A DNA stretch of 56,974 nt from Basidiobolus meristosporus CBS 931.73 (taxonomy: Eukaryota > Fungi > Basidiobolomycota), in the NCBI GenBank assembly GCA_002104905.1, contig MCFE01000570.1, positions 1 to 56,974 on the forward strand. Reading direction: 5' to 3'. A program made the position numbers and the translations under genes. The stretch's first letter is position 1. Each line of letters begins with the position of its first letter. Positions 11,001 through 56,974 of the stretch are shown piece by piece. The notes below the pieces were generated by a model, which saw only the letters and a list, made by a program, of their open reading frames with translations, did not search any database and was not told the DNA's origin.

Positions 11001-12305
11001 TTCAGTTTCGGCTTTTACGTCGGCCTCGGAAACTTTAGATGCTTGCTCCTTAGCGGCAGGGTTGACAATAGGAATGGCCTTCGATTGAGTACTCTTGGGA
11101 ACAGTAAATGCTTCCTTAATATCAGCTGCTTCATCTTGCTGGTCCTTCTTTTCGTCAGGTTTTCCGGATTGAGTCTTGGGCTTAGAAGTGGCTGGAGCCT
11201 CTTTATTGCTAACAGGGGGTGAACCCTTGAGGTCAACAACACCACCGGTCTTTGGGTTGACAATTCTGATGGCTCTGTTAGATTGAGGTGGAACGAAGGT
11301 GGGAGCGCCAGTATTCAAGCGAGGCTGAACACCAGGAGGCATGACGGGAACGGGGTATGGGACAGAGTACACAGGACGATAGAATCCTTGTTGACCGCTA
11401 GGATCAAATGGTGGTTGATATCCAGGATATTGGTATGGGTACTGAGCCATAGAAGGAGACATAGGTGGCTGAATTGGGCTATGCATGGGCTTATCTCTGG
11501 CTCTCTGTTGAGGAGAAAAGGCTGCAGGTATAACTGGGCTAGTGGCCATACCAGGGGATCCGGGGACTGCGTTCACTGGCATTGGGGACTTGGGATAGTG
11601 ATGAGGGCGGATATGAGGCTGGTTGGAAGGATGAGGTTGATGACCTTGACGAGGAGAGTATTGGTGAGGTTGGATAGGATGAGGCGCATGATGGGCACTG
11701 GGAGATTGAGCAGGACGAGGGCGAGGGGAAGGCTGTGTCAACTTGGGTGCCTCGACATTAGTGACTGGGGTAGGTCTAGGTTGGTGAACCGCCTCAGGCT
11801 GAGGTTTGCGCACTGGCGCATTCCCGCTGTTCTTTTCGTTAGAAGAACCAAAGACGGGTTTGGCAGTTTTGTTACCACCAGCAGGCTGCTCCTGCTGTTG
11901 TGTGGCATTTTCCTTCAGAGGAACCTTAGCAGAATCAATCGGCTCCTTGGCTGGTTCTGTAGAAGTACTTGCAGGTGCAGCTTGATTGATGGAACCAAAC
12001 TGAATTGCAGGAGCGCTCCCAGTAGATGGCTGACGAGCAGGAAATTGCACTCCTGAACCTTTAGAAGCAGAGATGACTGGCTTCTTTACCCAAGCATTAG
12101 GCACAGGTGCAGTTTGAGCGCCGCTTCCATTAGATTGAACTGTCTGCTGCTGTTTGGGTTGGGAATTGGGTTTTTCCGATTTGGGTTGGGGGGCTTTAGC
12201 AGATTGTGGTTGGGATGGAGTAGGAACAGGGTTCTTAGCTTTCTGTGCTAGTTGAGCGTAAGTAAACTGTGGTGTGGTTTTGTTGGAGCTGGGTTTGGGA
12301 TTCAT
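8016..12305 (-). CDS. TIF4631: Eukaryotic translation initiation factor 4G (eIF4E-binding motif, MIF4G and MA3 domains), single exon, 1429 aa
   Basis: eIF4E-binding YDASFLLQF (YxxxxLphi). MIF4G: RKVNGLLNKLTLEKFESISDKI...FEKATDEP...KRRGLGLMAFIGELFKL...SRIRFMLLDVIDLRSNKW. C-terminal MA3: MVEEYLSVQDVPEVITCIKEL...DIAIDVPQA. Confidence 0.97.
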   Translation of the reverse strand: MNPKPSSNKTTPQFTYAQLAQKAKNPVPTPSQPQSAKAPQPKSEKPNSQPKQQQTVQSNGSGAQTAPVPNAWVKKPVISASKGSGVQFPARQPSTGSAPAIQFGSINQAAPASTSTEPAKEPIDSAKVPLKENATQQQEQPAGGNKTAKPVFGSSNEKNSGNAPVRKPQPEAVHQPRPTPVTNVEAPKLTQPSPRPRPAQSPSAHHAPHPIQPHQYSPRQGHQPHPSNQPHIRPHHYPKSPMPVNAVPGSPGMATSPVIPAAFSPQQRARDKPMHSPIQPPMSPSMAQYPYQYPGYQPPFDPSGQQGFYRPVYSVPYPVPVMPPGVQPRLNTGAPTFVPPQSNRAIRIVNPKTGGVVDLKGSPPVSNKEAPATSKPKTQSGKPDEKKDQQDEAADIKEAFTVPKSTQSKAIPIVNPAAKEQASKVSEADVKAETEAPKKLAEPVAAPVPESKPEEPVQVEEKTEKVEASESETTPEAVVPVVEEVAEPVTVVQDSDKKEEPIVEASDEKPEPTPEVLEVKEAESDKIPQVEEASVPEVPKEEAQVPDTATDAQEITEEPGSVEEKKEEAVVPEVEVKEEPKPVETPEAKTEASKTDEPDTTAQPEAKSEKEDKPADPINNNASTLNPEQLNQVTYPPNITAPKSLVESGTLKYDASFLLQFKDVCKDRPSNMPTLESLGIEENARDDKRSASSGGRRGGRGGGPKGSNTFPGDMGSFKHTPKTSEERFAASQGAGGRGFNRGSMGGRSASGSNNMPGMGSREGRGSRSGRHKGKGERQQQGGPTIPLDEVVPLAFSKERWVPTKNNAEEEKDAKEVLCRKVNGLLNKLTLEKFESISDKIIELGDKSTEEKNGSSLQTIIQLIFEKATDEPNFIMVYASLCRKMMDKISPDVMDEGIRGKDNKPVAGGALFRKYLLSRCQEEFEKGWKVNLPDGSSLDNPNALLTDEYYIAAKAKRRGLGLMAFIGELFKLQMLTERIMHECIKRLLSNVQTPEEEETESLCKLMTTVGKQLDRKEAKNYMDAYFQRMKEMSVNKKLNSRIRFMLLDVIDLRSNKWVPRREVAGPKTISQIHQDAQKQKEETAEMLKKTASSGGRLPPINQQLSRTNSERRERRGPPGQGPDGWNTVGNAPSSRKTGDLTAFGNLTRSKSGANVSLGPGGGVFGALGGGSKGWKSSEAKGKEEPKPKPPSGNMFSALMSSESPRKEDKSFERKPLNLRPRSKPVPEETKAEEAKLTKEQAEPKVKAMVEEYLSVQDVPEVITCIKELGSPEFHSLVVSEFINEALDKKQKDIDAVIKLFKKLSSEEVISRESYVAGILEVMEFLEDIAIDVPQAFNHMGAMMAGTSIELEDLPKILELLLSSPGINPPSNKVLGEYLKRLSSDIGADALTEKFQKSGLEWSNVLPKAHQTDEKIEEFLKKNELEFLKTN

Positions 12306-25614: not shown

Positions 25615-27943
25615 ATGCTTGATACATCCACTCCACTTCAACCCACCTCCCCACTTCGCTTCGTGATGACCACATACAAGGACAAGATCATCCTCCGGGA
25701 TCTTATGGTCCAAACCACCTTGGGCGTGGATTCCTGGGAGCGTGAGAAGCCTCAGCCAGTCCTTCTGAACATTGTGTTGTTCACCAACGTCTCGAACGCC
25801 GGTGACCACGACAACTTGACCACCTCCATTCACTATGGTCACCTGTGTAAGGGTGTTCAGAAATTCGCCAAGGAGTCGAAGCACCGATCTATGGAAGCTT
25901 TCGCCAACGGAATTGCCCGGATTTGCTTGTACGACTTCAACGCCGCCATCGCTAACATTAAGGTGGAGAAGCCCAGGGCTTTGCTCAACGCCGACTCGGC
26001 TGGAGTTGAGATCACGCGCGTTAAATCGGACTTCGAGGATCTCTCGGAGGAGGAGAGACTCCAGGTGACTGAAGCCTTCAACCTACCTAACGACACCATA
26101 TTCGTTAAGAACCTAAGACTCAGCGCTATTATTGGGTGCAACCCTTGGGAAAGAGAACACAAACAGACCATTCTGTTGAACCTGGTCATCCATTCCGACC
26201 CTAAGTATCTTGGTACAAATATCGATCGCGTAGTGAAGCCTCACAATTACCTTACCATTGCCCGAGTGATCACCTCGCACGTAGAAGAGTCGGACTATAA
26301 AACTGTGGAGGCATTGTCAACTTCTGTTGCCAAGGTTGCGCTCGAACGATGCCATGTGCCTAGAATCACGGTCAAGGTTGAAAAACCTAGCGCCTTGATA
26401 TATGCTCAAGGCGCGGGAGTGGAGGTTACTCGGGACCAATCTGACTTCCCAGCGGAAATCAGCACCGATGCCCACTCTGAGGACACCCTAAGCACTCTCT
26501 ATCCCACCAAGGAGGAGCATGTCAGCATCCTTGCGGTTGGTACAAATCTTGGGGATCGAGTGGCAAATATCAAGTCCGCCTTGAAAGCCCTGCATGAGCA
26601 TCCTGATTGCCGGGTTGTCGACACCTCCTTCTTGTATGAAACCCCACCAATGTATCTAACTGAGCAACCACCCTTCCTCAACGGAGCCTGCAAGGTATTT
26701 CTCGTTGTCATTAATCTACCTGCCCATCAATTGCTAACCGGGCCATCATCCTTAGGTCTATACAAAGCTCAATCCCACCGACCTTTTGGCGCTCTGCAAG
26801 ACTATTGAGAAGGAAACTGGGAGAGTCCCAACAGTCCGCAACGGCCCTCGCGTCATCGACTTGGACATCTTGTTTTACGACAACTTGGAGTACAAATCCC
26901 CCACCCTGGAGATCCCCCATCCCCGCATCCAAGAGCGAGCATTTGTCTTGAAGCCACTCTGCGATATCGCCTCGGATCTGGAGCATCCCAAGCTATTCCG
27001 CACGTGTGGTCAATTGCTTTCTCAACTTGTCTATGTCCATCCTGAGGTCGACCAGGAGATCTTCAAGGTGATGCCTATTAGGGAGGCCCTTTGGAACTGG
27101 AACCAAAAAACCTATATCATGGGTATTCTCAACGTTACGCCCGACAGCTTCAGCGATGGCGGTCTACATAGCACCCTTGACACAGCTGTGCAGCATGCCG
27201 AGAAGCTGATTGAGGATGGAGCGGACATCATCGATGTTGGGGGCATGTCCACCCGCCCGGGGGCTGAGGAAATCACGGTCGAAGAAGAGATCAGAAGAGT
27301 GGTTCCGGTGATTAAAGCACTTCGTGAAAAGGGAGTCACCGCTCCCATCTCGGTAGATACCTACCGCGCAGAAGTCGCCGAGCGTGCGGTCGAAGCTGGT
27401 GCGGACCTGATTAACGATGTGTCCGGAGGGTCGTTGGATCCCAAGATGTTCGAAACGATGGCCAAGCTTAATGTCCCTGTGTGTCTGATGCACATGAGAG
27501 GCAACACCAAGACCATGGCCACCTTGACCGAGTACAAAAATAACGATGTGATCGCCGACATCGTTGGCAAGTTAACCGAAAGCATTCGTAGCTGTATTAG
27601 ATCCGGACTCTACCGTTGGAATATCATCCTGGACCCTGGGATCGGATTCGCCAAGAACTCCGAGCAGAACTTCCAGATCCTACGTCGCCTTCCCGATATC
27701 GTCAGCCCCGAAAGCACCCTGAATGGCTTCCCAACGCTGGTGGGGCCTTCCCGCAAGGGATTCATCGGTCAGGTGACCGACAGGTCAGACGCCAAACAAC
27801 GGGTCTGGGGGACCGCAGCTGCTTGCTCCGCCTCCATAGCCGGTGGCTCGAATCTCCTTCGCGTCCACGACGTTCAAGAGATGATCGACGTAGTGAAGGT
27901 ATCGGATGCAATCTGGAAGGCTGGAGCCGAGAAAAGCAACTGA
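25615..27943 (+). CDS. FOL1: Trifunctional folate synthesis protein (DHNA-DHNA-HPPK-DHPS), one intron 26695-26755
   Basis: Two FolB repeats (DKIILRDL...SIHYG...MEAFA...VEKP and DTIFVKNL...HNY...VEAL...VEKP). HPPK: LAVGTNLGDR, SFLYETPPMY, GPRVIDLDIL, PHPRIQERAFVLKPL. DHPS: MGILNVTPDSFSDGG, DIIDVGGMSTRPG, LDPGIGFAK, GPSRKGFIG, LLRVHDV. Confidence 0.97.
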
Positions 27944-40641: not shown

Positions 40642-41565
40642 TCAGGCGAAGGCTGACTTCATTTCTTGGGCGACAGTCCTATAACAATCCCATTTCTTGT
40701 CGGCGGCATCTTTCCCAAGTGCCCTTTCCCAGACGTGTAACCAACCATGAAACACTCCCTCGTACACCTTCCCGATGAAGCTTCTCTTTTGGTCCTTAAA
40801 CTTGGCAATGAATTTCTCAATGTCCGCGATGTTAGGGTCATTCCGGGCGGCCAGGATAACCATAGAGTCGGGATAGGCGTCGGGGGTGGCGTAATTTACG
40901 GAAAGCAAGGGATTTCGTAGTGAGTCCTCGTCACCTTGAGTTGTTTGCAAGTAGGATTCGTGGTAGAAGTTACGTATTTTCGGGTCTTTTTCATCAAAAG
41001 TATTGTCCGAGCTGCGGGAAAAATCTATGGGAGAGTAAATACTCACGACTGCTTTAATGATATCCCGATTGGATTTCATCAATAGCTGCGAAAGCGCTAA
41101 AGCCAAGTGGCCACCAGCGCTCGTTCCTCCTACCGCCAACTTGGTGGTCTTGTATTCCTGGAGGATCCACTGACTAACAGCATAGGTGTCATTCAGGCCA
41201 GTGGGAAATGGATGTTCTGGTGCCAAGCGATACGCTGGCGAAATGACGATGCAACCCACCTCCTTGGCTAAAAAGAGGCAGAACTGTGAATCGTCGCCTT
41301 CATTTCCAGCAACAAAGCCTCCGCCATGAAGATTAAGGTAAACAGGATAGTTCTGTGGATTTCTGGAATCGTAGGAGGGTGGGAAATAGAAAGCGCAACG
41401 TAAGGCCGGATTTGTAGGTATCTGCTGGATAAGGGAGGGGGAATAGTTATGCCGCATGAAGAAAGAAACCAAGCCGCCCAAACTCCTGATGAGGTAAACC
41501 TTAGCATAGAGCAGAACTTTGGCCCAGCCGTGGGTAGCCGTGGAGGTGTTCTGTAGAGTAGTCAT
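40642..41565 (-). CDS. Alpha/beta hydrolase, GDXG/HSL (Abhydrolase_3) family, intronless
   Basis: HGGGF oxyanion motif, YRLAPEHPFP, nucleophile GTSAGG, acid ARND, His in FHGW. Confidence 0.92.
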   Translation of the reverse strand: MTTLQNTSTATHGWAKVLLYAKVYLIRSLGGLVSFFMRHNYSPSLIQQIPTNPALRCAFYFPPSYDSRNPQNYPVYLNLHGGGFVAGNEGDDSQFCLFLAKEVGCIVISPAYRLAPEHPFPTGLNDTYAVSQWILQEYKTTKLAVGGTSAGGHLALALSQLLMKSNRDIIKAVVSIYSPIDFSRSSDNTFDEKDPKIRNFYHESYLQTTQGDEDSLRNPLLSVNYATPDAYPDSMVILAARNDPNIADIEKFIAKFKDQKRSFIGKVYEGVFHGWLHVWERALGKDAADKKWDCYRTVAQEMKSAFA

Positions 41566-41770
41566 ATTGTGTTCGTATGGGCGTGGACGTCTTCAAGGAA
41601 TTGTATTTGTATCAAGGAACTGGAGTTGGCATCCGCAGTGATCTAGTTATGCTTTCTACGTGTAACCCAGATGGTGACTGAAAGTCAAATTTCTCTGTGG
41701 CGTTGATTGATCTGCGGAATAGCAGCTCAGCTGATAGCTATTTTATTTAATCGTTACATACAGTAGTGCC

Positions 41771-42127
41771 TTAAAAATCGAACACCCTATTCGTTCTGCT
41801 GACAAGAACACAGCGATTGCTGTATGTCTGTTTGAATTTGAGACCAGCTCCCTTTGCGGTCACCGTCACAGGATCAAAGATGGCTATGCAGAGTGCTCCG
41901 TCGTCCGCGAGTCCTGCAATGGAACCATTTGCCTTGTCAAGAGCTGAACAGGCAGCTTTTGGATGAGGATGAGTGCCTCCAGCGGGGTGACATGTCAAAG
42001 TTACTTCCGACAGCTTTGGGCCTTTCGTATTCCGTCCTTGGTAAATAGTAAGCGTGTAGTGACTCTCCCTAGCCACCACAATCAGGGAACTGCTCAGAAG
42101 GGCACTAAGTAGGCTATACAATTTCAT
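41771..42127 (-). CDS. Secreted Streptomyces subtilisin inhibitor (SSI, MEROPS I16)-family protein, intronless
   Basis: Hydrophobic signal peptide, then VTLTCHPAGGTHPHPKAACSAL, CIAIFDPVTVTAKG, QTYSNRC and C-terminal VFDF. Four Cys (46, 60, 80, 106) match the SSI disulfide pattern. Confidence 0.9.
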   Translation of the reverse strand: MKLYSLLSALLSSSLIVVARESHYTLTIYQGRNTKGPKLSEVTLTCHPAGGTHPHPKAACSALDKANGSIAGLADDGALCIAIFDPVTVTAKGAGLKFKQTYSNRCVLVSRTNRVFDF

Positions 42128-43573
42128 TGATTCAGACTACTCGCTGACCATGCTATTTTATAGACTACGTTCATGAAACAGAGTAATTGGTTGGAGGTGG
42201 TCCACCTGTACGACCAGATTTAAACAGCTACGATTAAATCCGCTTCTGACTAACCCATTCTACTCATTAAACGTGGTGTGCATTGTTGGCACTAGATGGA
42301 GGTGGCTGAGGGCCGAAGGTCCCATCAATTTCAAATTGGTGGTGGTTGAATGGATCAGTAGCATACCCGCGTAACTGAGGCCTGTTTCAAAATCCGAACA
42401 CAATGCCAGTGCCCCTGGCCTGGATGCAACGATTACTGTACGTTTTTTGGAATCGAGGATCTTGTAGCCATGGCCTTTGGTTGTGACTGTGGCAGATTGG
42501 AAGACAAACAGACTCATCATATCACCTCTTTGGGGATGAACTCGATACACCTCCTTCACACGCTGTTGGATTGTGCGTTGTGCCATTGGTGGATGCTTTC
42601 AAGCAATTGATCAGTAGCAAACGGGTGTCTGTTGTAGCGCTGGAGAGATGGATTCAGGGCTCCATCATGTACGTCTTAGATGGGATCACCAAGTCTGACG
42701 TGTCAGCATTGTTGAAACAGTGCTATGTTTGAATGCGCATTGGGCCTACACCCAGAATAGATCTCGAAGAGTCCGTTGCATTGTTGCCCAGTTTTATAAT
42801 GCTTCATAGAGGCGGAGTGTAAGAAGGAATCCTATGGAATGTGGACATCGGTTAAACAAGATTTTTCGTTGGGGTTGTATTTTAAACTAAGCTCTTTTAA
42901 CGTTGAAGCTTTGTCGTGCAACATTTTAACACGTTGGATTGTCGTTTTGCTACGTACCTCTTCCAAGTCCAATATTGTAAGCCCAATTTCATGCATTCAA
43001 AAAGGCTGGCCCGGATATTACTGGCTTACCAAATGCTTCTGTTACATACAGATCTTGCTATATGCTGCGAAGCATCATACTTGAACCGGCCATTTCCAGC
43101 CAGATATATTGATAACTACTGACTCGACGCTTTTAGCGGAAGGTCGTTCACTCATTGCTTAATTATGGAGCATGCTCAGACTTTTGGCAGCATAATTGGA
43201 AATTAGATATGTGGGTACACCACGGCGGGCTTTAGGAATATGCTAAGATTGAGTGATGCACGGGAAATTTTGCCTGTATTCATATTGATTCAAAATTCTG
43301 GCTAATTATCAAACGTTACTTCAACTATATTATCGTATTGATGAGCAAGTAGACCCAGTATCTGGTATCAGTAGTAACACAATATCTGTTGAGTGTCTTT
43401 TGGGATTTGCTCATATAAATTGGCATGCCCTAAGCTTTGTAGGCATACTCGTATTGTTGAATCAAGCTCAGCACCTAAAGTATTAGTATATCCAAAACTT
43501 GTACTAGGCTAATAGTTAAATTATGAATTATTGACCTTAGGGTTATGCTGCAATTCTTGGCTGATATTATTGT

Positions 43574-44125
43574 TATAAGGGTTTTAGAGATATTGCACGT
43601 GACTAGCAGAACAAGTAGAATATGTGGTTTTCACTTAATGGTTTAGTGAATGTAAAGTGGTATTTATACTCTTACATGACCTTGGCAAAATAAACATAAA
43701 GAATATGCTCAGAAAAATCCCCAAGACATGTGTGCAAAGTTTGGGGCTCTTTGGACATCTTTGAGAATTCTCATGTCCTGGGTACCTGATATTTGTTGCA
43801 ATATTCTGAGGAGTATTGGAAGTGATGTGGAGAACTAGAGGACTTACATGTTATTCACTTGTAGATTTATTGATCAAAAGTATGGTATTTGTACTTTTGA
43901 TACAGTGGAGCAAAAAAAATGCTTAGAGCTTACTAAGGAAGGTCTCAAGAATATGTGTGCAAAGTTTGGGGGCTTTTGGACAACTTTGAGAAAGATCATA
44001 ATCTGGATACCTGATAATTTAGTGAAAATATACCAAGTAAATCTGGACCAGATATTTGGCCAGGGCAGAATGCTAATCAAAGAACAAGATCTATGTTACT
44101 AAGTTAGCATGAATATTTAGGTGAC
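43574..44125 (-). repeat. Two tandem degenerate copies (about 43574-43810, truncated; about 43811-44125) of the copia LTR, in inverted orientation
   Basis: Both segments align by eye to the reverse complement of 44221-44566. Shared blocks include gaacaagtaga.tatgtggttttcacttaatg (first copy), atgtgtgcaaagtttgggg...ttggaca.ctttgagaa (both copies) and actaagttag..tgaatatttaggtg (second copy). Confidence 0.8.
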
Positions 44126-44220
44126 AACTTAACAATTACCACCCTCCCACTGAACAAAATATTCATAAGTGATATACATATTGAGAGTGTGTGTTGTATC
44201 TAAGAGAAAAGTGTAATAAG

Positions 44221-44566
44221 TGTTGTAAAAATTCGTATTTCCACCTAAATATTCACCTAACTTAGTCACTTAGATCATCACCTTCAAATCCTAGAGAATA
44301 CTGACCAAATTCCTTGTTGGGATTTACTTAGAATATTTTCATCAAAATACCAGGTACCCAGAACATGAAAATTCTCAAAGTTGTCCAAACAGCCCCAAAC
44401 TTTGCACACATGTTCTTGGGACCTTTCTTAATCTACTTTACGTGTTTGTTATGCCAAGACCATGTAAAAGTATAAATACTACTTTTACATTCAATAAATC
44501 ATTAAGTGAAAACCACATAATCTACTTGTTCTCCCAATCACTTCCAATATCTCCAAGACTCTTACA
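44221..44566 (+). repeat. 5' LTR of a Ty1/copia element (346 bp)
   Basis: Starts TGTTG and ends TACA, directly before the PBS. TATAAATA at 44471, AATAAA at 44493. Homologous solo copies lie upstream. Confidence 0.8.
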
Positions 44567-44569
44567 AAA

Positions 44570-44581
44570 GGTTATGAGCCC
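44570..44581 (+). promoter_or_regulatory. Primer-binding site GGTTATGAGCCC, complementary to the anticodon stem-loop of initiator tRNA-Met (Ty5/Drosophila copia half-tRNA type)
   Basis: Lies 3 nt after the LTR CA end. Reverse complement GGGCTCATAACC matches the yeast tRNAiMet anticodon arm as I recall it. Overlaps the gag ATG at 44574. Confidence 0.75.
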
Positions 44582-46876
44582 CAAGCTGTCACTCTCTGCA
44601 ATGTCTACTACTGCTATTACTGGAATTTTTCCCTCTGCTGAAAAGTTGGATGGATCTAACTACCAAGTGTGGAAGGTGAAGATGAAGATGCTGCTACAAG
44701 AAAGAGGCCTTTGGGATATTGTCATGGGAGAAGAATGCCCTCCTAAAAATGTGGGAGAGGAAGCTTTAAAGTACCAGAAGAAAGAGCAAAGTGCCTTTAA
44801 CTGCATTTGCCATAATGTCAAGGACAAATTGCTAATTCAATGCTCAAGAGCAAAAACGGCAAAGAATGCCTGGAAAGCATTAGAAGACACCTACCAGTCA
44901 TGTTCAGCTGCCAAGAAGATGTATCTGAGATGAAAATTCTTTACTACAAAGATGCTGCCAGGAGAAGAAATGAAAAATCTAATTAACAGAACTACCCTGC
45001 TGGTAGATGGGATGGAATCTGTGGGAGTACCAACTACTGATGAGGATGTGATAGTTACCATCCTGAATAGCCTGAAAGACAAGTTTCAGGGCCTTGTATC
45101 AGCCCTAGAGTCCAGAACTGAAGATTTGACCTTAAATTACATATATGGAAGGCTCCTGGATGAAGAATTAAGAAAAACAAGCGCCAATAAGAAGGAAGAA
45201 GAAAATACTTTAATAAGCAATGATACCCAACAAAGGAGGTACCCAAGACCCTACAAAGACAACAGCAACCTGTTTTATAACTACTGCAAAAGGAAAGGAC
45301 ACACATCAGACCGGTGTCTCAAAAAGAAAGATAATTAGCAAAAGAAGCCTGAATATGGAAATGCTGCAACAACTGAAGATAGACTATTCATATCTGCACT
45401 AAATATGACCACAAACAAGGATTCTCAGACGTGGTACATTGACTCTGGAGCTTCTCAACACATTACACACCAAAAAGAACTTTTTACCCAATATCAAGAA
45501 ATTCCAATTAAGAAGGTTTTCATGGGTGACAATAGAACACTTGATGCAGTGGGAGAAGGAACTATCCAAGTAAACCTTAGAAGCAGTGAAGGAAGCCATA
45601 CACTGACCTTTAAAGAAGTACTCTATGTACCAGAAATAGCCAAGAACCTACTCTCTGTAAGCAAGGCCACAGCAGAAGGACTCAGTTTCAGTTTTGACAA
45701 TTCTGGATGCTGGATCACTGATCAAAATGGTGCCCATATTGCTTTGGGCATCAGAGATCAGAATCTATACAAGTTGACTTATATTCCATCATATTTGGAA
45801 GCCAATATAAGTAGCTTAAATGAAGAAACACCAATGCTTTGGCACAGGAGATTTGGACATATCAATTTTGATTATTTGCGCAAAATGATCAAAGATCAGC
45901 TAATTTCTGGAGTGAAAATTGATCCCCCAGCTAACTTGGAGCACTGTGAAGCCTGCATATATGGGAAACACGCCAGACAACCGTTCAAGAGCTCTGGATT
46001 AATCAAAACTAAGAAAAAACTAGATCTAATTCACTCAGATCTGTGTGGACCTATGCAAATTTATCCTTAGGCGGGATGAAGTATTTAATCACCTTTATTG
46101 ATGATTATACATGATACATATGGGTCTACTTCATGGAGAGAAAGGAAGAAGCTCTGTCTAAGCTCAGGGAGTTTAAAGCCATGGTGGAGAGAGAAACTGG
46201 TGAAAAAATCACGAAAATACGCACTGACAATGGTGGAGAATATACCTCAAAACTCTTCATCCACTTCTGCAAAATTCATGGGATAAAGCAAGAGACTACT
46301 GTACCATACTCCCCACAGCAGAATGGAGTAGCAGAACAAGCTAACAGATCAATAATTGATATGGCAAGATCCATGATCCATGATCAAAAATTATCCTATG
46401 ATTTTTGGGCGGAATCAGTTGCCACTGCTGTATATCTTAAAAATAGGAGTTATAACAGAATACTTTGTGATTCTATTCCATTTGAAGCATGGTATGGATA
46501 CAGACCAAGTGCAGAACATCTAAGAATATTTGGGTGTACAGCATATGCCAAAAAACTGGCTGGAAATCAGTCAAAATGCCTATTCAGTCTATATTGATGA
46601 ACCCCAGACTGTAAAAGAGGCCCTAAATAGCCCACAGACAAAGTTTTGGAGATCTGCAAAGACTGAGGAATATCAGGCCCTGATGGAAAATCAAACTTGG
46701 GACTTAGTCAAATTACCAATCAACCAAAAATCAATTGGATGCAGATGGGTCTTCAAGACAAAATACAAGGCTGATGGTACAATTGAAAGATACAAAGCAA
46801 GACTTGTAGCCAAAGGATACTCTCAAACAAAAGGACTTGACTATACTGAGACCTTTGCACCGGTAGCCAAGTTTAA
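44574..46876 (+). mobile_element. Decayed Ty1/copia gag-pol, internally deleted and truncated within RT
   Basis: Gag KLDGSNYQVWKVKMKMLL..GLW; degenerate knuckle YNYCKRKGHTSDRC; protease WYIDSGASQH; LWHRRFGH; integrase DLIHSDLCGPM, IRTDNGGEY, QQNGVAE; RT WDLV...GCRWVFKTK...[12 protein letters not shown]...TFAPVAK, then an abrupt junction. Stops at 44931, 45336 and about 46101, plus a frameshift about 46065. No RNase H or 3' LTR in the window. Confidence 0.95.
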
Positions 46877-46877
46877 T

Positions 46878-46955
46878 TTAGGGGAGGGAAAGTCACCAAG
46901 GTAGGTGAAATCTTTATTTGATTTCAGACAAGTCTAACTACAAATAAAGAAGCCA
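46878..46955 (-). other. Conserved 3'-terminal double-hairpin cis element, copy in D
   Basis: Plus-strand arms tcacc 46893-46897 / ggtga 46904-46908 and tctttatttg 46911-46920 / caaataaaga 46941-46950. Confidence 0.8.
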
Positions 46956-47006
46956 GCTGGGAATAGAAGATTCCCAAAGTAAACACTAAGTTGAATATGA
47001 ATAAAT

Positions 47007-47735
47007 CTAAGCTAAAGTTAAGGCAGTATCCCAGAGTACACTGGAGTTCAGGTTCATGGGGGAGTGAAGTAGATAAGCTTGAGAGATATAATAATCTTTT
47101 AAGAAGTGCGTAATAGCAGGAGAAGGGGAGTTTTTGATAAGTGAAGTGAATCTGGAGAGCAGAGATTCTTCTAATGAGAAGGTCTTGTAAACTGGAGAAT
47201 CAGGAAACTCTTCAAAGGCATGGTCAGTAGGTTCCCAGTAAAACTGGTCAGAGACATTTTGAGAGAACTCTTTAGCAATACTTTTGTCAAGTACTACCTC
47301 CAGAGTGTGATGGTTGATAAATCTCATGTTAACAATCTTGGATAAGTTGTAACCTTGTTGCTTGAGATACATCCTATGCTCAGATATAGGAATAAACTCC
47401 GCATTGGCAAAGTAGCAGACAGCCCAGTCAGTAGCAGGAGGCAAATCAGAAGTGGCAGGAAACTTTCTTTTAGTTTTAGGAAGAGCAGCAGGATATCTTG
47501 AGGAAGCAGGAACACACTTTTTGACAGCTTCAGAGTAGGAAGATTGAGCAGGAGCAGATGATTCTGGGGGAGTCTTGTTGGCAGGAAGAGTTGACACAGG
47601 GACAATAGATTCTTGCAGATCAGAGAAGGCAGAAAAGAGCTTTTGAACTTGTTTCTTGAGTAAAGCATTTTCAGCTTCAACAAGTGCAAGCCTTTCCTCA
47701 AGGAAGGAAATCTGAAGGGAATGGAATGAAGGCAT
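47007..47735 (-). CDS. LINE ORF1-like protein (coiled coil plus RRM-like domain), 242 aa, intact
   Basis: ATG 47735. Heptad-like LEERLALVEAENALLKKQVQKL; SYSEAVKK. Gapless 42-aa match to element C ORF1 with 12 identities (Y..PI..L..LS.I..FI..LE..L). Confidence 0.75.
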   Translation of the reverse strand: MPSFHSLQISFLEERLALVEAENALLKKQVQKLFSAFSDLQESIVPVSTLPANKTPPESSAPAQSSYSEAVKKCVPASSRYPAALPKTKRKFPATSDLPPATDWAVCYFANAEFIPISEHRMYLKQQGYNLSKIVNMRFINHHTLEVVLDKSIAKEFSQNVSDQFYWEPTDHAFEEFPDSPVYKTFSLEESLLSRFTSLIKNSPSPAITHFLKDYYISQAYLLHSPMNLNSSVLWDTALTLA

Positions 47736-47773
47736 AAGAAATAAGAAGAACAGGGTAGGTTGGGGTGGGTGGG

Positions 47774-48003
47774 TAGGAAAATTAGCAGGGAGAAGAGAAG
47801 GAAGGAGCAAAAATTCCAGAAGTCAGAATTTATAGATGGATGGACAAGGGTAGATGGATGGATTATTCCTGGGTTAGGAAAATTAGCAGGGAGAAGAGAA
47901 GGAAGGAGCAAAAATTCCAGAAGTCAGAATTTATAGATGGATGGACAAGGGTAGATGGATGGATTATTCCTGGGTTAGGAAAATTAGCAGGGAGAAGAGA
48001 AGG
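47774..48003 (-). repeat. About 2.3 tandem copies of a 101-bp unit at the 5' end of element D
   Basis: taggaaaattagcagggagaagagaagg... starts at 47774, 47875 and 47976; the copies are essentially identical. Confidence 0.92.
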
Positions 48004-51000
48004 GTTAGGGGTCTAAATTCTTTTATTGAATCTGATCAAGTATAGTAATACTATTTCAACTTGATTCAAGTTGAAAAGTGCATATTGTACAAAGAAGATA
48101 TATCTATAGTAATGTGAAGGTAAAATACTGCTCAAGTTGAGTTGAGTTCTGAAAAGAAATTTGTCAACAAATCAGGCTAGAAAATGAAGTAAAGCTGGGA
48201 GTTATTTGAAAGCAAAGCACTAAGGAAAAGTGTAGAGCTATACTACCACTTCCTGAAAGGCAGGGATCTCACAGGAAGGCAGAAGCTCAGGTCTAATTGC
48301 AGATATGATAGCAGAAAGTCTCTGGATGAGCTCCCTTTGTTTGTGAAATTGGAACAAAGATTGGGTATCTTTGAACCCAAAGCAGCTCTATACATGAGAG
48401 AAGTAAAAATACCTGCTCCAGTAGGGGCACTTAGAATCCAAGCAAAGTGTGTTCATTCTCCACCTTATGGCCTGGAAGGCAAAGAAGGAACTCCTGATGT
48501 AAAGGGATATGTCTGCTCCACTATGGGAATGTCTACTCTCATGAGAAATAAGTCCAACTCTGTCTTTTGAGCTAGTAACTCTGGAGATATTCTCCAGCTT
48601 CCTTTTATGCATTGCTACAGAGAGAGGAATATGCTCTCTAGGTGGCTTGGCACTGTTGGAGGCCAGATAATCTCTATAACCATCAGGAAAGTGTATCTTC
48701 TTTCTCACCAATAACTTTGGGGTGGCTTGGACTAAGTTGTTAGTAATCTTATTGACTAAGATCTTCAAAGGATTATTGGGTGATGCTTTTGCATAGTGCT
48801 GCCCAAATCTGATACCTAAAGTCTCAAATCTGATTGGCACAGCCTCAATACCAGTCAGACTATGTATAAGCCTCTGATATTGCCTAGAATGGTAGTCAGA
48901 AGCATTGACTACCCAGCCAATAGCTTCTTGCTGCAGAGCTTGTAGCTTGGTAATGAGGTTAGGATCAGCAGCCAAACACATCATAGGAGCAGCATACTCC
49001 CAAGATGACCTCACAAAGGCCTTGAATAGCTGTAGCCTAATCAGAGGATGCCATCTGGCCCCTTTGAGCTGTAGGAATCTCAAAGTAGCAGAAGCCTTTT
49101 GAATACACTTTTCAGTGTAAGCTGCCCAAGAAATACCACTTTGACAAGTTGGGAGTCCAAGGTAGCTGTAAGAGGAAGGTTGAGGAAGAAGGGAGTTATT
49201 GAAGGAAATATTCCACTCTGGTGTGGGACCAATGTATGCTGATTTAGCAGTGTTTACCTCCATACCATTGGCAGTACACCATTGGCTGACTTTACTCAGC
49301 AAACAATTAGCTTCTGAGAGACTCCTAGGCAGCAATTGGATGTCATCAGCAAATAACAGTGCAGAGGGCACAGCAGCTCCTGAGTCATTGACGCAGAGAC
49401 TTTGAGCCAGGTCATCAATGTAGACATTGAACAGGATTGGTGAACGCAAAGATCCCTGGAATAGCCCCCTGAGCCTGGGAAATGGAGATGATATCACACC
49501 ATTAACACTAATGGTGGAATAGCAGGCTGAGAAGAGTGAGTGTACAATCCTAAGAAGCTGACTGGATACATTCTGGTTCTTTAGCTTCTTCAGGAGTATT
49601 GGGATCACTACCCTATCATATGCTTGCTTCAGGTCAATAAAGATTCTGTGTTTTCTTTCTTCATGACCTGATAGGTAAAAAGCATCATGAGATACAACTG
49701 AATGTGTTACAGTAGAGTAGCCACCCCTGAAGCCAGCTTGTGCAGGATGAAACTGGGCCAAGGGGGAGTCCTTCAAGTGGTTGAGGAGGCAGGCCTCAAA
49801 TATTCTTCTAAGCATTGGTGTCAAGGCAATAGGCCTGAAGTTGTCAATGGTTGAGGAAGTGGACTTCTTTTGCAAAGGGTGAATGTGAGAGAGATTCCAC
49901 TATGAAGGGGTAAACCCTAGCCTGAGGCAATGATGAAAGAAAATCTTCAAATCATCTATGAAAGCTGCATTTCTAGCCAAAACCTTGAGAATGCATATAT
50001 GAAGAGGGTCCAGACCAGCAGACTTGGAAGAGGGATACTTGCTGATTGCAAGAAGAAGAGACTTGGCAGTGAACCATTGACTATCAGAGAGGGTGTCTTG
50101 CATGAAAGTCCCAAATGCTGGAACCCAGCCATCTTTAAGGCAATGAGCAGGTGGGTATGCAAATACTTCTTGAAAGTACTTGTATGCATCATCCACAGCA
50201 GAGATACCAGGATCTCTTGAACTGATTATTACTTCTGCCTGAGTTACCCTTTGAGCTTGCTTGAATATCACAGCAGCCTGCTGGGCAGCTGAGGCAGAGT
50301 GAAGTCTCCAAAGGGGGTCACTTCTCCTAGGACCAGATTTGGCAGCATGAACTGAGTAAGTTCCCAGGTACTCCTCACATATGACCAATACCAGGGAGTG
50401 GAAAGCAGTATAGGCAGCATCAATAGCAGCAGAGATGGTTCCTATAGGAGAACAGGATGTAAGCTCTTCTAGATGTCTCCAGGCAGTTTGCAGTATAGGA
50501 GACTCCAAAGAGTAATGGCTGCTAATGAGTGATTGAACCATAGGCTTCTCTAGTGGCTGAAGATGCAGCTTGATTGAGTCAGAAGAAGAGAAATTCTGGG
50601 TGTTAGAGGAAGAGTAGGCCATTGACACCACAGCAGCCATAAATATATGGTCAGACTGGCCACACATAACATCAGACTGGAAGTACCAATGAGCCATTGT
50701 GTTGTATCTGACAAAAGCATGATCAGGAGTGCTTCCAGTGGGATGGGGGGAAGGTGCTCCATACCAAGTCTTAGAAGTAGACTCTCAAATAAGTCTATTC
50801 TACTCCTTGGTCCAACCTTCTTGGAGCCAAAGAGTCTACCAAAGTGAGTGTTGATATTGCCAAAGAGCAGAGTGGGAGGCTGAGTGGGCAGGAATGAGGC
50901 AATATCCTGACAGGACATTGAGGGAGGGAAGTAGACAGTCATTAGGCTGACTGACATCAGAGTTACACATATTGTATATTCAGTGCAGGAGACCATGGAT

Positions 51001-52125
51001 ATCTTTGGCCTCAGATGTGGTGATACTAGACAGATCAGTCCAGCCTTCTCATGACCAGTTATGATTGGGTTAGGGACAATCCTGTTAGGGCCAATCCTTT
51101 TGGAGGTGGCTAGGAAGTATGAGTGTGATGAGTGCAGAGCTTGATCAACAAACCAAGTTTCAGCCAGGAAAATTATATCATATCTATTATCTTTGATTAG
51201 GTCAGTGACACCAGACCACTTGTGAAAGCTTAATCCTTGGCAATTCCAGTAGCCAATCTTCAGGGGCTGGGTAGATGTCATCATTGATGAGTAGTGGGAG
51301 CTGACTGAGACTGATGCTGATCATCAGCTACTGAGATAGGGCCAGGTAAGGGATCAGGCTCATGTTCATGATCTAAACTAATCATGATCTCATCAGGATT
51401 TGCTGAGGTGGTAATGGTTGATTCATTGGTGATAATTGGGAAGCCAGTCTCCTTAGCCAAATCAGTCAGGTAAGACTTCTATGTGTCTCTGTTTGACATG
51501 TTGTAAGACTGCTGCAGTCTTCTTGCATATGCAGCCTTCACTTGCTCAGCCACAATGGGAGTGGCTTCAGGGTCCAAGGGCTTGGAAGGATCTACCTTGC
51601 CAAGTAGTTTGAGAAAGGGGTATTTCTTCACTTTAGCAATGAATGAGTAAGCATACTCAGCAGAGAGAGTGAACTCTAAACTATTTCTTCCTATGAAGTT
51701 GATACTCCATATCCTGGATAGTTGAAATCTGAATTCAAAGAGGATAGATTTCACCTGCCTTATTGGTTGATGCCTAATACCTTGAAGGTACATCCTACAG
51801 ACTTTGTGGCTGACCTCTGCCTTTGTGCTGGTAAAGGGAGGCTTTGCACCAACACAAAGTCTCATAGCAGCAGTCAGTCTGTTGATTTCTTTTTTGGAGC
51901 CAGTCTTGGCATTTTTCTTTGCTATTTCAGCAAAGGTAGGTCTTCTGTATGGCTGAGTTGCTGGTTGGGGAAGTGACTCTGCTTTGTATGGGTTACTCTG
52001 GGTGGTTTGGACTGGGTTTGTACTGGTGCCACTGTGAGGAGGAGCTACATTGCTCCCAGATTGCCTGGTCAAAGGAGACTCCATTGGTGCTACTGTAGGC
52101 TTTCCTGAATCATGAAGGATGTCAC
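48004..52125 (-). mobile_element. Element C: LINE with ORF1 and APE-RT ORF2, 5'-truncated within ORF1 and degenerate
   Basis: ORF1 51281-52125, open up to the junction, premature TAG 51479. APE KIGYWNCQGL, DIIFLAETW, GNINTH, DHAF, SDHI. RT NFRPIAL, QAGFR, FIDLKQAYDRV, GLFQGS..SPILFNVYIDDL, LFADD, YSYLGL. Frameshift about 50745, stops 49900 and 48388. 3' end ...AATAAAAGAATTTAGACCCCTAAC. Confidence 0.92.
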
Positions 52126-52190
52126 TTAGGGGGGGGGGAGACAGTCACCAACAGGTGAAATCTTTATTTCAGTTGAAACAAAGAAGCCAG
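52126..52190 (-). other. Conserved 3'-terminal double-hairpin cis element, copy in B
   Basis: tcacc 52145-52149 / ggtga 52154-52158; tctttatttc 52161-52170 / gaaacaaaga 52175-52184 (G-U wobble in the minus-strand RNA). Confidence 0.8.
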
Positions 52191-54242
52191 CACTACTGTT
52201 GTAGCTTTGATACAAGAGTGTGTAGCTGAGGGGAATTTGTAGGTAAGTTAATAAGAAGTGATGATAGTTCTTCAGTGCTCAAGACACTGTTCAGTGGGAA
52301 GGGGGGTAGCAAGAGAGGTAAGAATGACTTGTGAACAACATTAATGAGGGGAATGTGATAAGGATTGATGTTCATCATAAAGGGAGTGTGCTGCTGCAGA
52401 TATTGCTGCCAAAAGTCTGTCAAGTACTTCAGGTAGGCCAGCTTGGGTTTTTCTGACTGCAGAATGTAGTGAGCAAACTTCTTGACTTCAGGATCTCCAA
52501 GTATAGTTCTCCAGCAGGAGCCAGGTGTTGTGTGGTGTGTTCTCTTCCAGGCCTTAATCAGTGGGTTGTTGCAGTTGTGAAGTCTGAGATATAATCTGGT
52601 TCTAAGGTAGAGAAGTCTGATCTTATAGGGCATAAACCCAAAAGCACCAAGAATAGCATGTCTGTAGGTGCATTCAGGCAAATGAGGCACCAAGGAGGTA
52701 ATGCACCATACTGCAAACTTGTCAAGCTTAGTGCAGTCTCTAGAAGTAAGAGAGAGAAGTGGTAAGCCAAATTCCAGGACAGGGAAGACAAACTGCTTGA
52801 GTAGAAGGAGGCAGCTGGGAGCTGAAGTTGTAGGAGGAGTAACAGCCAGTAGCTTGTGGAGTGCCTGTCTTGCTAGGATGATTCTCTTCTTCAGGTGTGC
52901 TCCAGAGTCTAGTCCAGTAGGAAGGAAAGGAAAGCCAAGATATGTAGCAGAAACCTGAGCAGGTAGAGTGAAGTTCTCCAAGTTGATGGGAGAGCCCAAA
53001 GGTACTGTCTTTGCAATGGAAAGCTGGAGATTATTCTTCTGCAGATACTGGTGGATGGTCTGGGAGTCTTGTTGCACATTGGAGGAGGATATTCTGATGT
53101 CATCAGCAAAGAGAGTAACCAGGCAGTCAGCTGAGAGTCTTGGGAAATAATTCAGGAAGATGGCAAACAGTATAGGACCAAGCACAGAGCCTTGAACCAC
53201 TCCATTAGGAACTGAGAACACTGGTGATTGCTCACTTGGGTGCAGAATTCTTGCTTGTGGATCCAGAAACAGAGACCTGACAAGGAGGGTGAGAGAGGTA
53301 CTGGAGAAGCATTGCAACTTGGACCAAAGCAGATTTCTGTCAACTGAATCAAAGGCCTTAGTAATATCAAACAGAACAGAGGGATACTTGCACTGGAGAG
53401 AGTGATCTTGGCTAAGTATGACTGCATATTCCAAGGAGAGGCCAGGACAAAGCCAAACTGTGCAGGATGAAACTTGAGGGAGTCAGAGTAGAGCTCCTGA
53501 GCAAGCAGAAGCTCAAACACCTTTCTGCAGGTGGGCAGCAGAGATATTGGCCTGTAGGAGCTAGGATCCAGGTGCTTTCCTTTACCCTTGTACAGTGGCA
53601 GAACATTTGCAAAGGACCATTCCTCAGGAGTAGAAAGCTGGGCTGAGCATTGCTGAAACAGTGGAAGCAGAAGTGCAGACATGGCCTTGGTACTAGTCTT
53701 CAGAAGCTCATAGGAGATTGTGTCCACACCTGGAGCAGTAGAGTTGGGAAGCCTCTTGAGCACATTATGAATTCTCCTTTGATCAAGTGCAAGTGGGATG
53801 GGCAGAGTCTTGAAGTCAGGATGAAAGCCAGGAGTTGAGTACTGCTTTGTAGAGAAGAAGATGTTAGCCAGCTGTTCTGTTGAAGGTAACTTCCTGGAAG
53901 AGGGCCTCATTGCCCTGTAGAGTCTTGATACTGTTCTTGTTATAGAGTTGGAAGATTGCAGAGGCAAGGAACTCATAATATGATCCCAGAGCTGAGTATG
54001 CAGAGTGTGGTGAATTGCCTTGGAGTGGTGTATTGCTGTCAGGAGGAGTTTCTCTGTTTTTGGGTTAGGGAAGCTCAGGTAGCTTTGTTGCAGGGCTGAA
54101 ACAATGGATTCCCATTTTCTTGAGGTAACAGCAGTAGTCTTGCATGGCAGTGAGAGGGAGGCAGACACCAGAATCAGATGCTTCATAAAGAGCCAGGCAA
54201 AGTTGAGATCATCTGGCAGGGAAAGTAGCAAACTGGCAAGGG
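52126..54242 (-). mobile_element. Element B: 5'-truncated LINE ORF2 (RT), relative of element A, one frameshift
   Basis: TAPGVDTI, YKGKG..DPSSYRPISLL, QFGF, LFDITKAFDSVDR, GVVQGSVLGPILF, LFADD, YLGFPF. Frameshift about 53430. Stop 52193, then the conserved 3' motif and a poly-C plus TAA end. Confidence 0.92.
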
Positions 54243-54320
54243 TTAGGGGAGGGAAAGTCACCAAGTTGGTGAAATCTTTATTTGGGTTAAGAACTAATCT
54301 AAGTACAAATAAAGAAGCCA
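54243..54320 (-). other. Conserved 3'-terminal double-hairpin cis element, copy in A
   Basis: tcacc 54258-54262 / ggtga 54268-54272; tctttatttg 54275-54284 / caaataaaga 54306-54315. Confidence 0.8.
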
Positions 54321-56974
54321 ATTAAGAGGTCTAGAACCTCTCTAATAAGTAATCTAATCTATGTTTTGTTTCATCTCTAATGTTTGTTTCAATAAAGTAA
54401 AGCTCATCAGGGGTAAATATAAAATTCAGGGGTTTTGGGGGAAGTACAAATTGTAGATGTTTCTGATCAATATAATCCAAGACTGGAACCCAGCCTGGGA
54501 TTAGGTGTAGTAGGAAAGGTGTGTGGACTTGTAAGTAGCTCTGCCACATAGATCTTAGATGGTCCTGAGCCAGTAGTCTTGGTTTCTCAGCTTTTTGAAG
54601 TTTTGAAGCAAGCTCTGTTACTACAGCAGAGCCAACCAGGGTGTGCCAGCAAGAAGATTTCAGGGAGGAGTTAGATTGAAGCCATAGTTTGATGGAGGGG
54701 TTATGTGATTTCTGAAGTTTGACTAGGAAGGAAGCCCGGAGATAGATCATTCGGATTTGGTATGGGTAGAACCCAAAGGCTCCATTAGTTGCATGGATAT
54801 AGGGAGATACTGGAAGATAAGGTACCAAGGATCTGATACACTGATGGAGAAATTTATCCAGGCGGTGAAGTTCTCTGGAGGTTAGGGGTATAATGTGGAG
54901 ACCAAATTCAAGTACTGGCAGCACATACTGCTTCAGAAGTATAGGGATCTTTTGAATTGGAGTGTCTGGAGTGACTACTACCAGAAGCTTTTTGAGAGCC
55001 TGTTGGGCAAGACGGATCCTATTATTCAGGTGGAGCTTTGAGTCAATCCCATGTTGACAAAACGGCAGACCTAGATATATTGCAGTTTGTTGTGGCAGAA
55101 TGCTAGTGTTCTGTATAGTTGTAGTGCATCCAATTGGGACTGTCTTGGAAATTGAGAGTGAGAGGTTGTTGGCAGCCAAGTACTTCTCAATGATGGCAGT
55201 GTCTGCTATGGGATTAGGAGTAGCAATCTTGATATCATCCGCATAGAGAGTTAGTAGTGGATAGGGAGAGTCTGGTGAGGGGCCTTTTGGAAATAAAGGA
55301 AAGTCATGTAGGAATATCACAAATAGTAAGGGACCTAGTACAGATCCTTGGACTACTCCATTTGGAACCTCATAAGTCTCTGATGTGCAACTTGGATGCA
55401 AAATTTTGGCTGAGTTCTCACAAAATAGAGAACGTACAAGAAGGGTCATTGGTAGTGTGGTAACTGCTAATAGCTTTCTCCAAAGCAGAGCTCTGTCCAC
55501 AGAGTCAAAGGCTTTAGTAATGTCAAACAGAATGGTTGGCAATGAGAATTGAAGTGAATGATCATGGCTTAGCACTACAGCCATATCCAAGGAGAGTTTG
55601 GGCAAGAAGCCAAACTGAGAAGGATGGAATGGATATAGTTGAGATTGCAAGGATCTTGCTATCATAAGCTCAAAGATTTTCCGGCAGGTTGGTAGGAGTG
55701 AAACTGGCCGGTAAGAACCTGGGAGTGAGTGTTTCCCCTTCCCTTTGTATAAGGGTATTACATTTGCCTGTGACCAGGCCTTTGGGGTAGTCAATTGTTG
55801 GGCACAGATAGAGTAGAATGGGAGAAGTAAGTGACTCATTTTGGAGTAGCACACCCGGAGTAGATTGTAGGTAATCAAGTCATGTCCAGGTGCAGTATTT
55901 GCAGGAAGCTTCTTTAAAATTTTCTCCAGAAGCTTTGCTGAAACCACAATTGGAGATGTTGGACTGGTGGATATGTTACCAGTATGGTAGAAAGGAGGAG
56001 TGGGATGCATGGTTGAATCAAAGAATATAGGGGCCAGTTTGTCTGGTGATGGTATACTCCTTGCTTGGGGTCTCATGGCTTTGTATACTCTTGATATGGA
56101 CCTTGTGGTGGCATTCATATTTACTAAGGGCAAGGTATCCATGATATGAGCCCATAATCTAGTATGCTCAGTGATCTGTAGTGACTTGGAGTAGGAGATT
56201 GCGCTTTCCAGGAGGTTCTGTGTTTTTGGGTTAGGGAAACATAGGTAGCTGGAATTTAAGGCAGAAATGATGGATTTCCATTTAAGTTGGTTTGCAGATG
56301 GCTTTTGGTAGGACTTGGTGGGCAGGGCCAGACAGCCAGTGATTATGATGAAATGCTGGTAAAATAGCCATAATGCATTTATATCATCACAAATCCATGC
56401 AGGTAAGCTGGGAAATGCATATTCTGTAAGCAAGGATAGGTAGTTGGCAAAGTCCTGTGTCTGTGATACTGAAGCTTTGGCTGGCAGGATTGTAAACGGC
56501 TGAAGAAGGGTGCCAATTGGTAGGGTTTTTCTGGCAGAAATGATAATATGTATTGGCTTGTGATCAGATTTCTCTAGTGAACCACAGCTGATATCCTCTG
56601 GAATGCTTGTAACCTGGTGGATGTACTGTAAGGCAGCTGGAGTAGCTGTTACCCAGTCAACACAACGTTGAGCTTGCTGAGTGTTTACAGTGACCAGATG
56701 ATTTTGTCGGAGGAACTTTTTAAAGTGCTCCTCTCGGGTTCTAAGTCTGGATGAAATAGTGGTGATATTTTCAGGGTGGGGGATATTTATATCTCCCACT
56801 ACCATACAAGGGATTGATGAGCTGTTGATGAATTCTGATGTGGCCAAGAAAATTGCCAGTGTTATGGAGTTAGACAGAGATGGAGGGAGATAGATAATAA
56901 TGGCTACTATAGTTGGAAGTGTTAGAGCATAGCAGTAATACTCATAGATGATGGATACATTTGCTGAGGGTGCA
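54243..56974 (-). mobile_element. Element A: LINE APE-RT ORF2, uninterrupted and running off the window edge
   Basis: Frame is open from 54331 to the window end. APE IIIYLPPS, VVGDIN, VDWV, SDHKPI; RT SYRPVSLL, FDITKAFDSVDR, GVVQGSVLGPLLF, LYADD, YLGLPF. 87-nt 3' UTR with the conserved motif. Confidence 0.93.

Follow-up and report, generated by a model that had tools for sequence, protein, structure and literature searches.

How did a protease inhibitor of an actinobacterial family come to sit in the genome of a fungus, and does the gene still make a working protein there? The question is raised by a short coding sequence in the window (the whole stretch of DNA that was analysed, 56,974 nucleotides), which a first-pass annotation had described as a gene of the Streptomyces subtilisin inhibitor (SSI) type, gained by horizontal transfer and domesticated as a secreted inhibitor. 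Basidiobolus lives in the guts of amphibians and reptiles and occasionally infects people. The earlier description of the open reading frame is correct in every testable point, and we put at roughly 80% the probability of the following reading: the gene encodes a functional, secreted and canonical inhibitor of the SSI (I16) family, was derived from an actinobacterium in a Basidiobolus ancestor, and has been domesticated and duplicated in the fungus, with one copy having since decayed.

The gene is an intronless coding sequence at positions 41771..42127 of the reverse strand, stop codon included, which opens with an ATG and runs through 118 codons in an uninterrupted frame with no internal stops, as had been annotated. 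Profile, fold and reading frame all assign the protein to the SSI family (MEROPS I16, PF00720). The match to PF00720 ("Subtilisin inhibitor-like") scores 67 bits (E 1.4e-18), well over the Pfam cutoff of 23.9 bits, and covers positions 3–92 of the 92 in the profile. All four family cysteines (C46, C60, C80 and C106) are fully conserved across an alignment of 30 family members, which together with the profile score bears out the SSI signature and the four cysteines seen at first pass; the disulfides of SSI are 35–50 and 71–101 (SSI numbering). SSI-family inhibitors were the only significant sequence matches in the PDB, the best being sermetstatin/ScNPI (4hwx, E 2.8e-13), followed by SSTI (6i0i) and SSI (3ssi/2sic). 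The AlphaFold2 model of the protein, which was computed from this family alignment, has a mean pLDDT of 89.7, with low order confined to the first ~20 residues (pLDDT 50–63 over residues 1–20, and at least 94 elsewhere). A Foldseek search of the PDB with this model gave 14 matches at E ≤ 0.001, all of them SSI-family chains, and the next match was at E 0.24; superposition on 3ssi gave a TM-score of 0.85 (by target) and an rmsd of 1.5 Å over 105 residues. The gene is confirmed as real and intact.

The protein shares its Pfam family, fold, four cysteines and reactive-loop position (two residues past the third cysteine) with SSI itself, the inhibitor of S. albogriseolus (I16; 3SSI, 2SIC), a small secreted protein of ~100 mature residues, as the window protein is predicted to be. 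Identity between the two is ~30%, and P1 is Met in SSI but Ala in the window protein. The window protein further differs in lacking four loop residues between its last two strands, in its putative eukaryotic signal peptide and in being encoded on a fungal chromosome. An N-G-S sequon was also pointed out by the first-pass annotation, and is present as N67-G68-S69 (41921..41929, reverse strand; codons 41929-41921). As a feature of domestication it was rejected, the closest ortholog, in B. meristosporus, having S-G-S, and because it is absent from that ortholog we read the sequon as probably incidental.

Residue-level and family alignments place the reactive-site loop at 41870..41890 of the reverse strand, with the residues C80(P3)-I81(P2)-A82(P1)-I83(P1')-F84-D85-P86. 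The segment from C80 to P86 aligns with C-P-M-Y-F-D-P in sermetstatin and C-T-K-E-W-N-P in SSTI, and A82 therefore stands at P1; the loop follows the third cysteine directly and fits the family pattern C-x-P1-P1'-aromatic-D/N-P. A small aliphatic P1 residue such as Ala suits subtilisin/proteinase-K-like and elastase-like enzymes, and P1 substitution series of SSI still inhibit subtilisin. By analogy with the bacterial inhibitors, the secreted mature protein would act as a 'standard mechanism' serine-protease inhibitor, in which the loop C80-I81-A82-I83, pinned by a predicted C80-C106 disulfide, would dock like a substrate in the active site of the protease. With A82 as P1, the enzymes blocked would be subtilisin-like (S8) and possibly elastase/chymotrypsin-like (S1). 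Both the inhibitory activity and its targets are what we infer from this likeness, and the targets may be the secreted subtilases of the fungus itself, or proteases that it meets in the gut, whether bacterial or from the host.

The alternative which survives best, and which we still consider unlikely, is that the protein is a family member whose main target is something other than subtilisin, either a metalloprotease or a protease that activates another enzyme. Sermetstatin, of S. caespitosus (4HWX, 4HX2, 4HX3), is the closest solved relative at 38% identity and has been solved with both subtilisin and a metalloprotease, and the next-best structure match is SSTI; sermetstatin acts on snapalysin, and SSTI on a transglutaminase-activating metalloprotease. 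By their PDB titles, the solved complexes of SSI, sermetstatin and SSTI are with subtilisin, trypsin and metalloprotease. However, the canonical serine-protease loop is fully kept in the fungal protein, which argues for a serine protease as the main target. The loop scaffold of sermetstatin, C-x-P1-x-F-D-P-V-T-V-T-A, is nearly identical to that of the window protein; sermetstatin itself is a two-faced inhibitor, acting on serine proteases and metalloproteases alike.

The P1 residue itself differs from one Basidiobolus copy to another: it is Ala in the window protein and in one B. meristosporus paralog, Thr in the B. meristosporus ortholog P0001, Asp in P0003 and Phe in the B. ranarum protein P0006. 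Such differences among paralogs and orthologs suggest that Basidiobolus may hold a small inhibitor set tuned to different proteases, and the diversity of P1 among the copies argues for several targets. The contact residues of canonical inhibitors are hypervariable, and the P1 variation in Basidiobolus fits this pattern.

Where the gene came from was addressed through its distribution and phylogeny. The proteins closest to that of the window are from B. meristosporus CBS 931.73 (71%, 55% and 49% identity), and then from B. ranarum. A phmmer search against 1.84 billion representatives gave 800 homologs, and the named homologs outside Basidiobolus are all labelled Actinomycetota with one exception, their genera including Crossiella, Saccharopolyspora, Amycolatopsis, Actinopolyspora, Streptomyces, Nocardia, Longispora and others. 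Neighbours and clusters in the ESM Atlas were 100% Bacteria. This near-exclusive labelling agrees with the first-pass statement that SSI/I16 is typical of Actinobacteria. The same annotation had named a broad distribution across fungi as what would speak against transfer; in profile searches seeded with Basidiobolus sequences, Basidiobolus was the only fungus among the named homologs. The single exception in labelling, P0175, carries the alphaproteobacterial name 'Parasphingorhabdus pacifica' and groups with Saccharopolyspora and Haloactinomyces, i.e. with the Pseudonocardiales, and probably represents a mislabelled or contaminated assembly, or else a separate transfer.

In a 70-sequence IQ-TREE phylogeny (LG+C20), five Basidiobolus proteins and one Streptomyces protein form one group with support of 100/97 (UFB/aLRT), and the same group was recovered at 96/91 in a 33-sequence tree of the mature domain. 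Under midpoint rooting this group sits among actinobacterial branches, with 16–55% bootstrap at the enclosing nodes, and the tree is too weak at its deep nodes for a donor to be assigned to any one lineage of Actinobacteria. The reading that is best supported is an old transfer from an actinobacterium to the ancestor of the sampled Basidiobolus genomes, chiefly because of the lopsided taxonomic distribution and also because of the fixed syntenic position of the gene. The horizontal transfer and integration proposed at first pass are supported by the actinobacterial distribution and by the collinearity of the surrounding block in other Basidiobolus sequences.

Vertical inheritance, in which an ancient fungal or eukaryotic SSI gene was lost from nearly all lineages with no transfer at all, would require very many independent losses and is highly improbable. 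The poor support of deep nodes in the tree gives it some room, as do the SSI-like genes found in Mucorales too (Choanephora and Absidia) and a eukaryote-like, two-domain SSI protein in a metagenome. However, Basidiobolus-seeded profile searches gave only Basidiobolus and Actinobacteria, the Basidiobolus sequences branch amid actinobacterial ones and not outside them, and several actinobacterial proteins are 44–53% identical to the window protein. The metagenomic protein, P0154 (with a shorter form, P0005), is encoded on contig Ga0438674_002609 of JGI metagenome 3300039276 (L003:93-1664) and has 523 aa with two SSI domains, a hydrophobic N-terminus and long Lys/Glu/Ser-rich linkers. Its gene has a GC content of 0.48 and its amino-acid composition is eukaryote-like, and the tree places it apart from the Basidiobolus group; in a composition screen of 301 retrieved proteins, the only eukaryote-like ones were those of Basidiobolus and this two-domain protein. 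It may represent another eukaryotic lineage with SSI domains.

The genes of Mucorales were described by Min et al. (2017), who found 11 genes with PF00720 in Choanephora cucurbitarum and a further three in Absidia glauca (PMC5238444). These are mostly single-exon genes for proteins of 109–138 aa, mostly predicted to be secreted and with the four cysteines kept; they were interpreted as a transfer from Actinobacteria, and a role against plant immunity was proposed for them (PMC5238444). They resemble the Basidiobolus gene in being PF00720 genes of an early-diverging fungus ascribed to transfer from Actinobacteria, but differ in belonging to another fungal phylum, and a role in plant immunity is inapplicable to a fungus of gut and soil. 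Mucorales sequences never surfaced in the Basidiobolus-seeded searches, including the best 150 of the 800 phmmer matches, and this hints that the two groups may have acquired their SSI genes separately, though both may instead go back to a single older fungal acquisition.

The capture of an SSI gene by a fungus is hence not new in kind, having been published in 2017 for zygomycetes and being already annotated in Basidiobolus, where NCBI calls two of the three B. meristosporus proteins "subtilisin inhibitor" and UniRef gives that name to the third. Given PMC5238444 and the existing ortholog names, the case is less novel than the first-pass annotation implied. In the literature searched, PF00720 was mentioned in PMC5238444 only. 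Heavy gene uptake from bacteria was already known for Basidiobolus: Tabima et al. 2020 (PMC7466969) ascribed 127 gene models of B. meristosporus CBS 931.73 to an actinobacterial origin, and the main text of that study does not mention the SSI family by name.

The single bacterial sequence inside the fungal group, P0276, is an SSI gene of Streptomyces sp. ISL-98 (JAGGPB010000047, L002:6001-6432). Its contig is genuinely bacterial, with P450, ABC transporter and MarR genes and a GC content of 0.68. P0276 lies at the border of an island whose GC3 is 0.75–0.78; besides the SSI gene, the island comprises a DDE_5 transposase and two hypothetical genes, and a phage-type integrase follows it; the left flank of the island has GC3 of 0.88–0.97, and P0276 itself 0.76. 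The domain is 68% identical to the positional ortholog in B. ranarum and at most 46% identical to seven aligned actinobacterial SSIs, and a scan of one genome per bacterial species plus metagenomes found no closer relatives above 45–47%. P0276 is unusually rich in Lys for the family: its K/(K+R) ratio of 0.82 ranks third of 287 against a family median of 0.29, and its first-position GC is low (0.58). In the 33-sequence tree P0276 pairs with P0006 of B. ranarum (93/87), and taken at face value this pairing, together with the synteny, would mean that P0276 branches from within Basidiobolus.

A return transfer from fungus to bacterium, giving a path from bacterium to fungus and back to bacterium, is accordingly a tentative reading of P0276, to which we give rather less than even odds; if it is not a return, P0276 stands as the sole relative of the donor lineage among the sequences sampled. 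Four observations weigh against a return. The AU test leaves fungal monophyly unrejected (p = 0.36 in both datasets), strict quartet-informative sites amount to only 2:0:0, the GC3 of P0276 equals that of its bacterial island neighbours, and a one-residue gap before the third cysteine occurs in five of five fungal proteins but not in P0276. If confirmed, such a return, onto a mobile element of Streptomyces, would count among the rare transfers from a eukaryote to a bacterium.

Within Basidiobolus the gene can be followed between positional orthologs. P0001 (K493DRAFT_29461 of B. meristosporus) matches the window protein in position and in length (118 aa), is 71% identical and has the same loop deletion, differing at P1, which is Thr instead of Ala. 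P0006 (K7432_001405 of B. ranarum) is also a positional ortholog within the same gene order, but has Phe at P1, is larger (135 aa), retains the longer loop and shares only ~52–58% identity with the window protein. Compared with its B. meristosporus ortholog, the window gene has a dN of 0.18 and a dS of 1.60; the resulting dN/dS of 0.11 is approximate, as dS is near saturation, and indicates purifying selection on the SSI gene. There are three SSI paralogs in B. meristosporus. Look-ups for identical copies of the window's SSI and Abhydrolase_3 proteins gave no record; should the window be a duplicate of the B. meristosporus block that has diverged, and not another species or strain, these comparisons span two species and not three.

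A decayed tandem copy of the gene was detected at 42387..42517, in the same orientation (reverse strand) and starting ~260 bp upstream of the intact ATG. The recognisable part corresponds to residues ~79–118, split over two frames (hmmsearch E 5e-5 and 1e-4), and it keeps T-Y-S-N-R-C and a stop at the same aligned position as that of the intact gene. It has the longer G-x-G-Y form of the loop, and its source copy is therefore older than the four-residue deletion. The SSI gene has been duplicated in Basidiobolus, and at least one copy has decayed.

With a decayed copy adjoining it, the window gene could itself be a relic that no longer yields a working inhibitor. It has lost four residues, in the loop before the last strand, that are present in nearly all relatives, and relative to B. 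ranarum its protein has changed ~2.3 times faster than that of the neighbouring Abhydrolase_3 gene (dN 0.405 vs 0.178). We judge decay to be very unlikely nonetheless. The frame is intact in three of three genomes compared, dN/dS is 0.11, the four cysteines and the loop scaffold F-D-P-V-T are all kept, and the fold is predicted with high confidence. Furthermore, the four-residue deletion also occurs in the intact ortholog P0001, and is therefore old and tolerated.

The position of the gene in fungal DNA was examined through its neighbours. Between 30.1 and 42.2 kb the window shares its gene order, in inverted orientation, with scaffold MCFE01000020 of B. meristosporus at a DNA identity of 68–79%, and at this locus DNA identity to CBS 931.73 is only 72–79%. 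The shared block takes in ERG4/ERG24, ferrochelatase and a DAO-like gene before reaching K493DRAFT_29461, the SSI ortholog. Collinearity holds for JASJQH010000031 of B. ranarum as well, where the order is SSI, Abhydrolase_3, DAO, ferrochelatase. The Abhydrolase_3 gene (307 aa; 40642..41565, reverse strand) lies immediately downstream of the SSI gene both here and in B. ranarum, and it anchors the positional orthology, the B. ranarum copy being intact, 306 aa long and 74% identical. In B. meristosporus CBS 931.73, the Abhydrolase_3 gene beside SSI seems cut to short fragments (L001:10574-10973).

The neighbours in the window comprise Abhydrolase_3, DAO, ferrochelatase, ERG4/ERG24, PH, BTB, FolB-HPPK and eIF4G genes. 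Matches to ferrochelatase and ERG4/24 switch reading frame along their extent, and annotated models of the neighbours in B. meristosporus extend over more DNA than is needed to encode their proteins; unlike the intronless SSI gene, the neighbours are therefore split by introns. These frame jumps, with eIF4G, BTB and PH genes nearby, uphold the earlier remark that the gene is embedded among intron-containing eukaryotic genes. Two further ordinary eukaryotic genes are a FolB-HPPK fusion reading frame of the folate pathway (25615-26808, forward strand) and an eIF4G homolog with MIF4G, MA3 and eIF_4G1 domains in a single 1429-aa reading frame (8016-12305, reverse strand). Just past the SSI gene, at 43500-56974, the window becomes rich in retrotransposons, with a Copia-type gag/pre-integrase reading frame at 45405-46070 and several RVT_1 reading frames at 48388-56847, and synteny with B. 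meristosporus ends there. A repeat at ~43.57–44.57 kb has several copies on the scaffold of B. meristosporus too (L001 148-477, 8577-9189).

The sequences that flank and begin the gene appear to be of the host's type. A hydrophobic N-terminal segment covers codons 1–20 (42068..42127, reverse strand) and ends in V-V-A before R-E; pLDDT is low over this segment, and the Pfam SSI match begins at residue 22. We read it as a putative signal peptide of eukaryote type, from which we infer secretion, in line with the secretion-type architecture proposed at first pass. Its sequence is unrelated to the signal peptides of the bacterial homologs, which are rich in Ala. Upstream, a TATA motif TATAAAATA (42154..42162, reverse strand) starts 35 nt before the ATG, within a 12-nt block CTATAAAATAGC which is identical in B. 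meristosporus while the surrounding upstream DNA has diverged; the motif is a candidate eukaryotic core promoter. Downstream, AATAAA at 41742..41747 (reverse strand), 24 nt past the stop codon, is a candidate polyadenylation signal, and the B. meristosporus ortholog likewise has AATAAA just past its stop.

Base composition is also that of the surroundings, the reading frame having a GC content of 0.487 and GC3 of 0.46 against a window GC of 0.455, close to the neighbouring Abhydrolase_3 gene, whereas genes of the Streptomyces ISL-98 locus have GC3 of 0.75–0.97. Host-like composition, a putative eukaryote-type signal peptide, the TATA block and AATAAA are indications at the level of sequence that the SSI gene would have been domesticated. 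Bacterial contamination or a chimera, i.e. an actinobacterial reading frame mis-joined to fungal DNA, might be suspected of an intronless gene from an otherwise actinobacterial family, but is effectively excluded because the independent assemblies of B. meristosporus and B. ranarum repeat the same ortholog gene order, and it is further opposed by the composition of the frame (GC 0.49 and GC3 0.46, vs GC3 of 0.76 in the closest bacterial homolog and 0.88–0.97 in the native left flank of that homolog), the conserved TATA block upstream, and the fungal genes and fungal retrotransposons on either side. The chimeric contig that the first-pass annotation had named as a possible refutation was thus looked for in the gene order and not found.

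The course of events that we favour would begin with the ancestor of the sampled Basidiobolus genomes gaining an SSI gene from an actinobacterium. The gene would since have been domesticated and duplicated in the fungus, with at least one of the copies decaying.

The locus is a clean example of a fungus capturing and keeping a bacterial secreted protease inhibitor, and combines in one place a fixed chromosomal position, candidate host-type signals for regulation and secretion, evidence of purifying selection, a specificity residue that varies and the turnover of copies. The finding suggests that borrowed inhibitors may help Basidiobolus to cope with the protease-rich gut.
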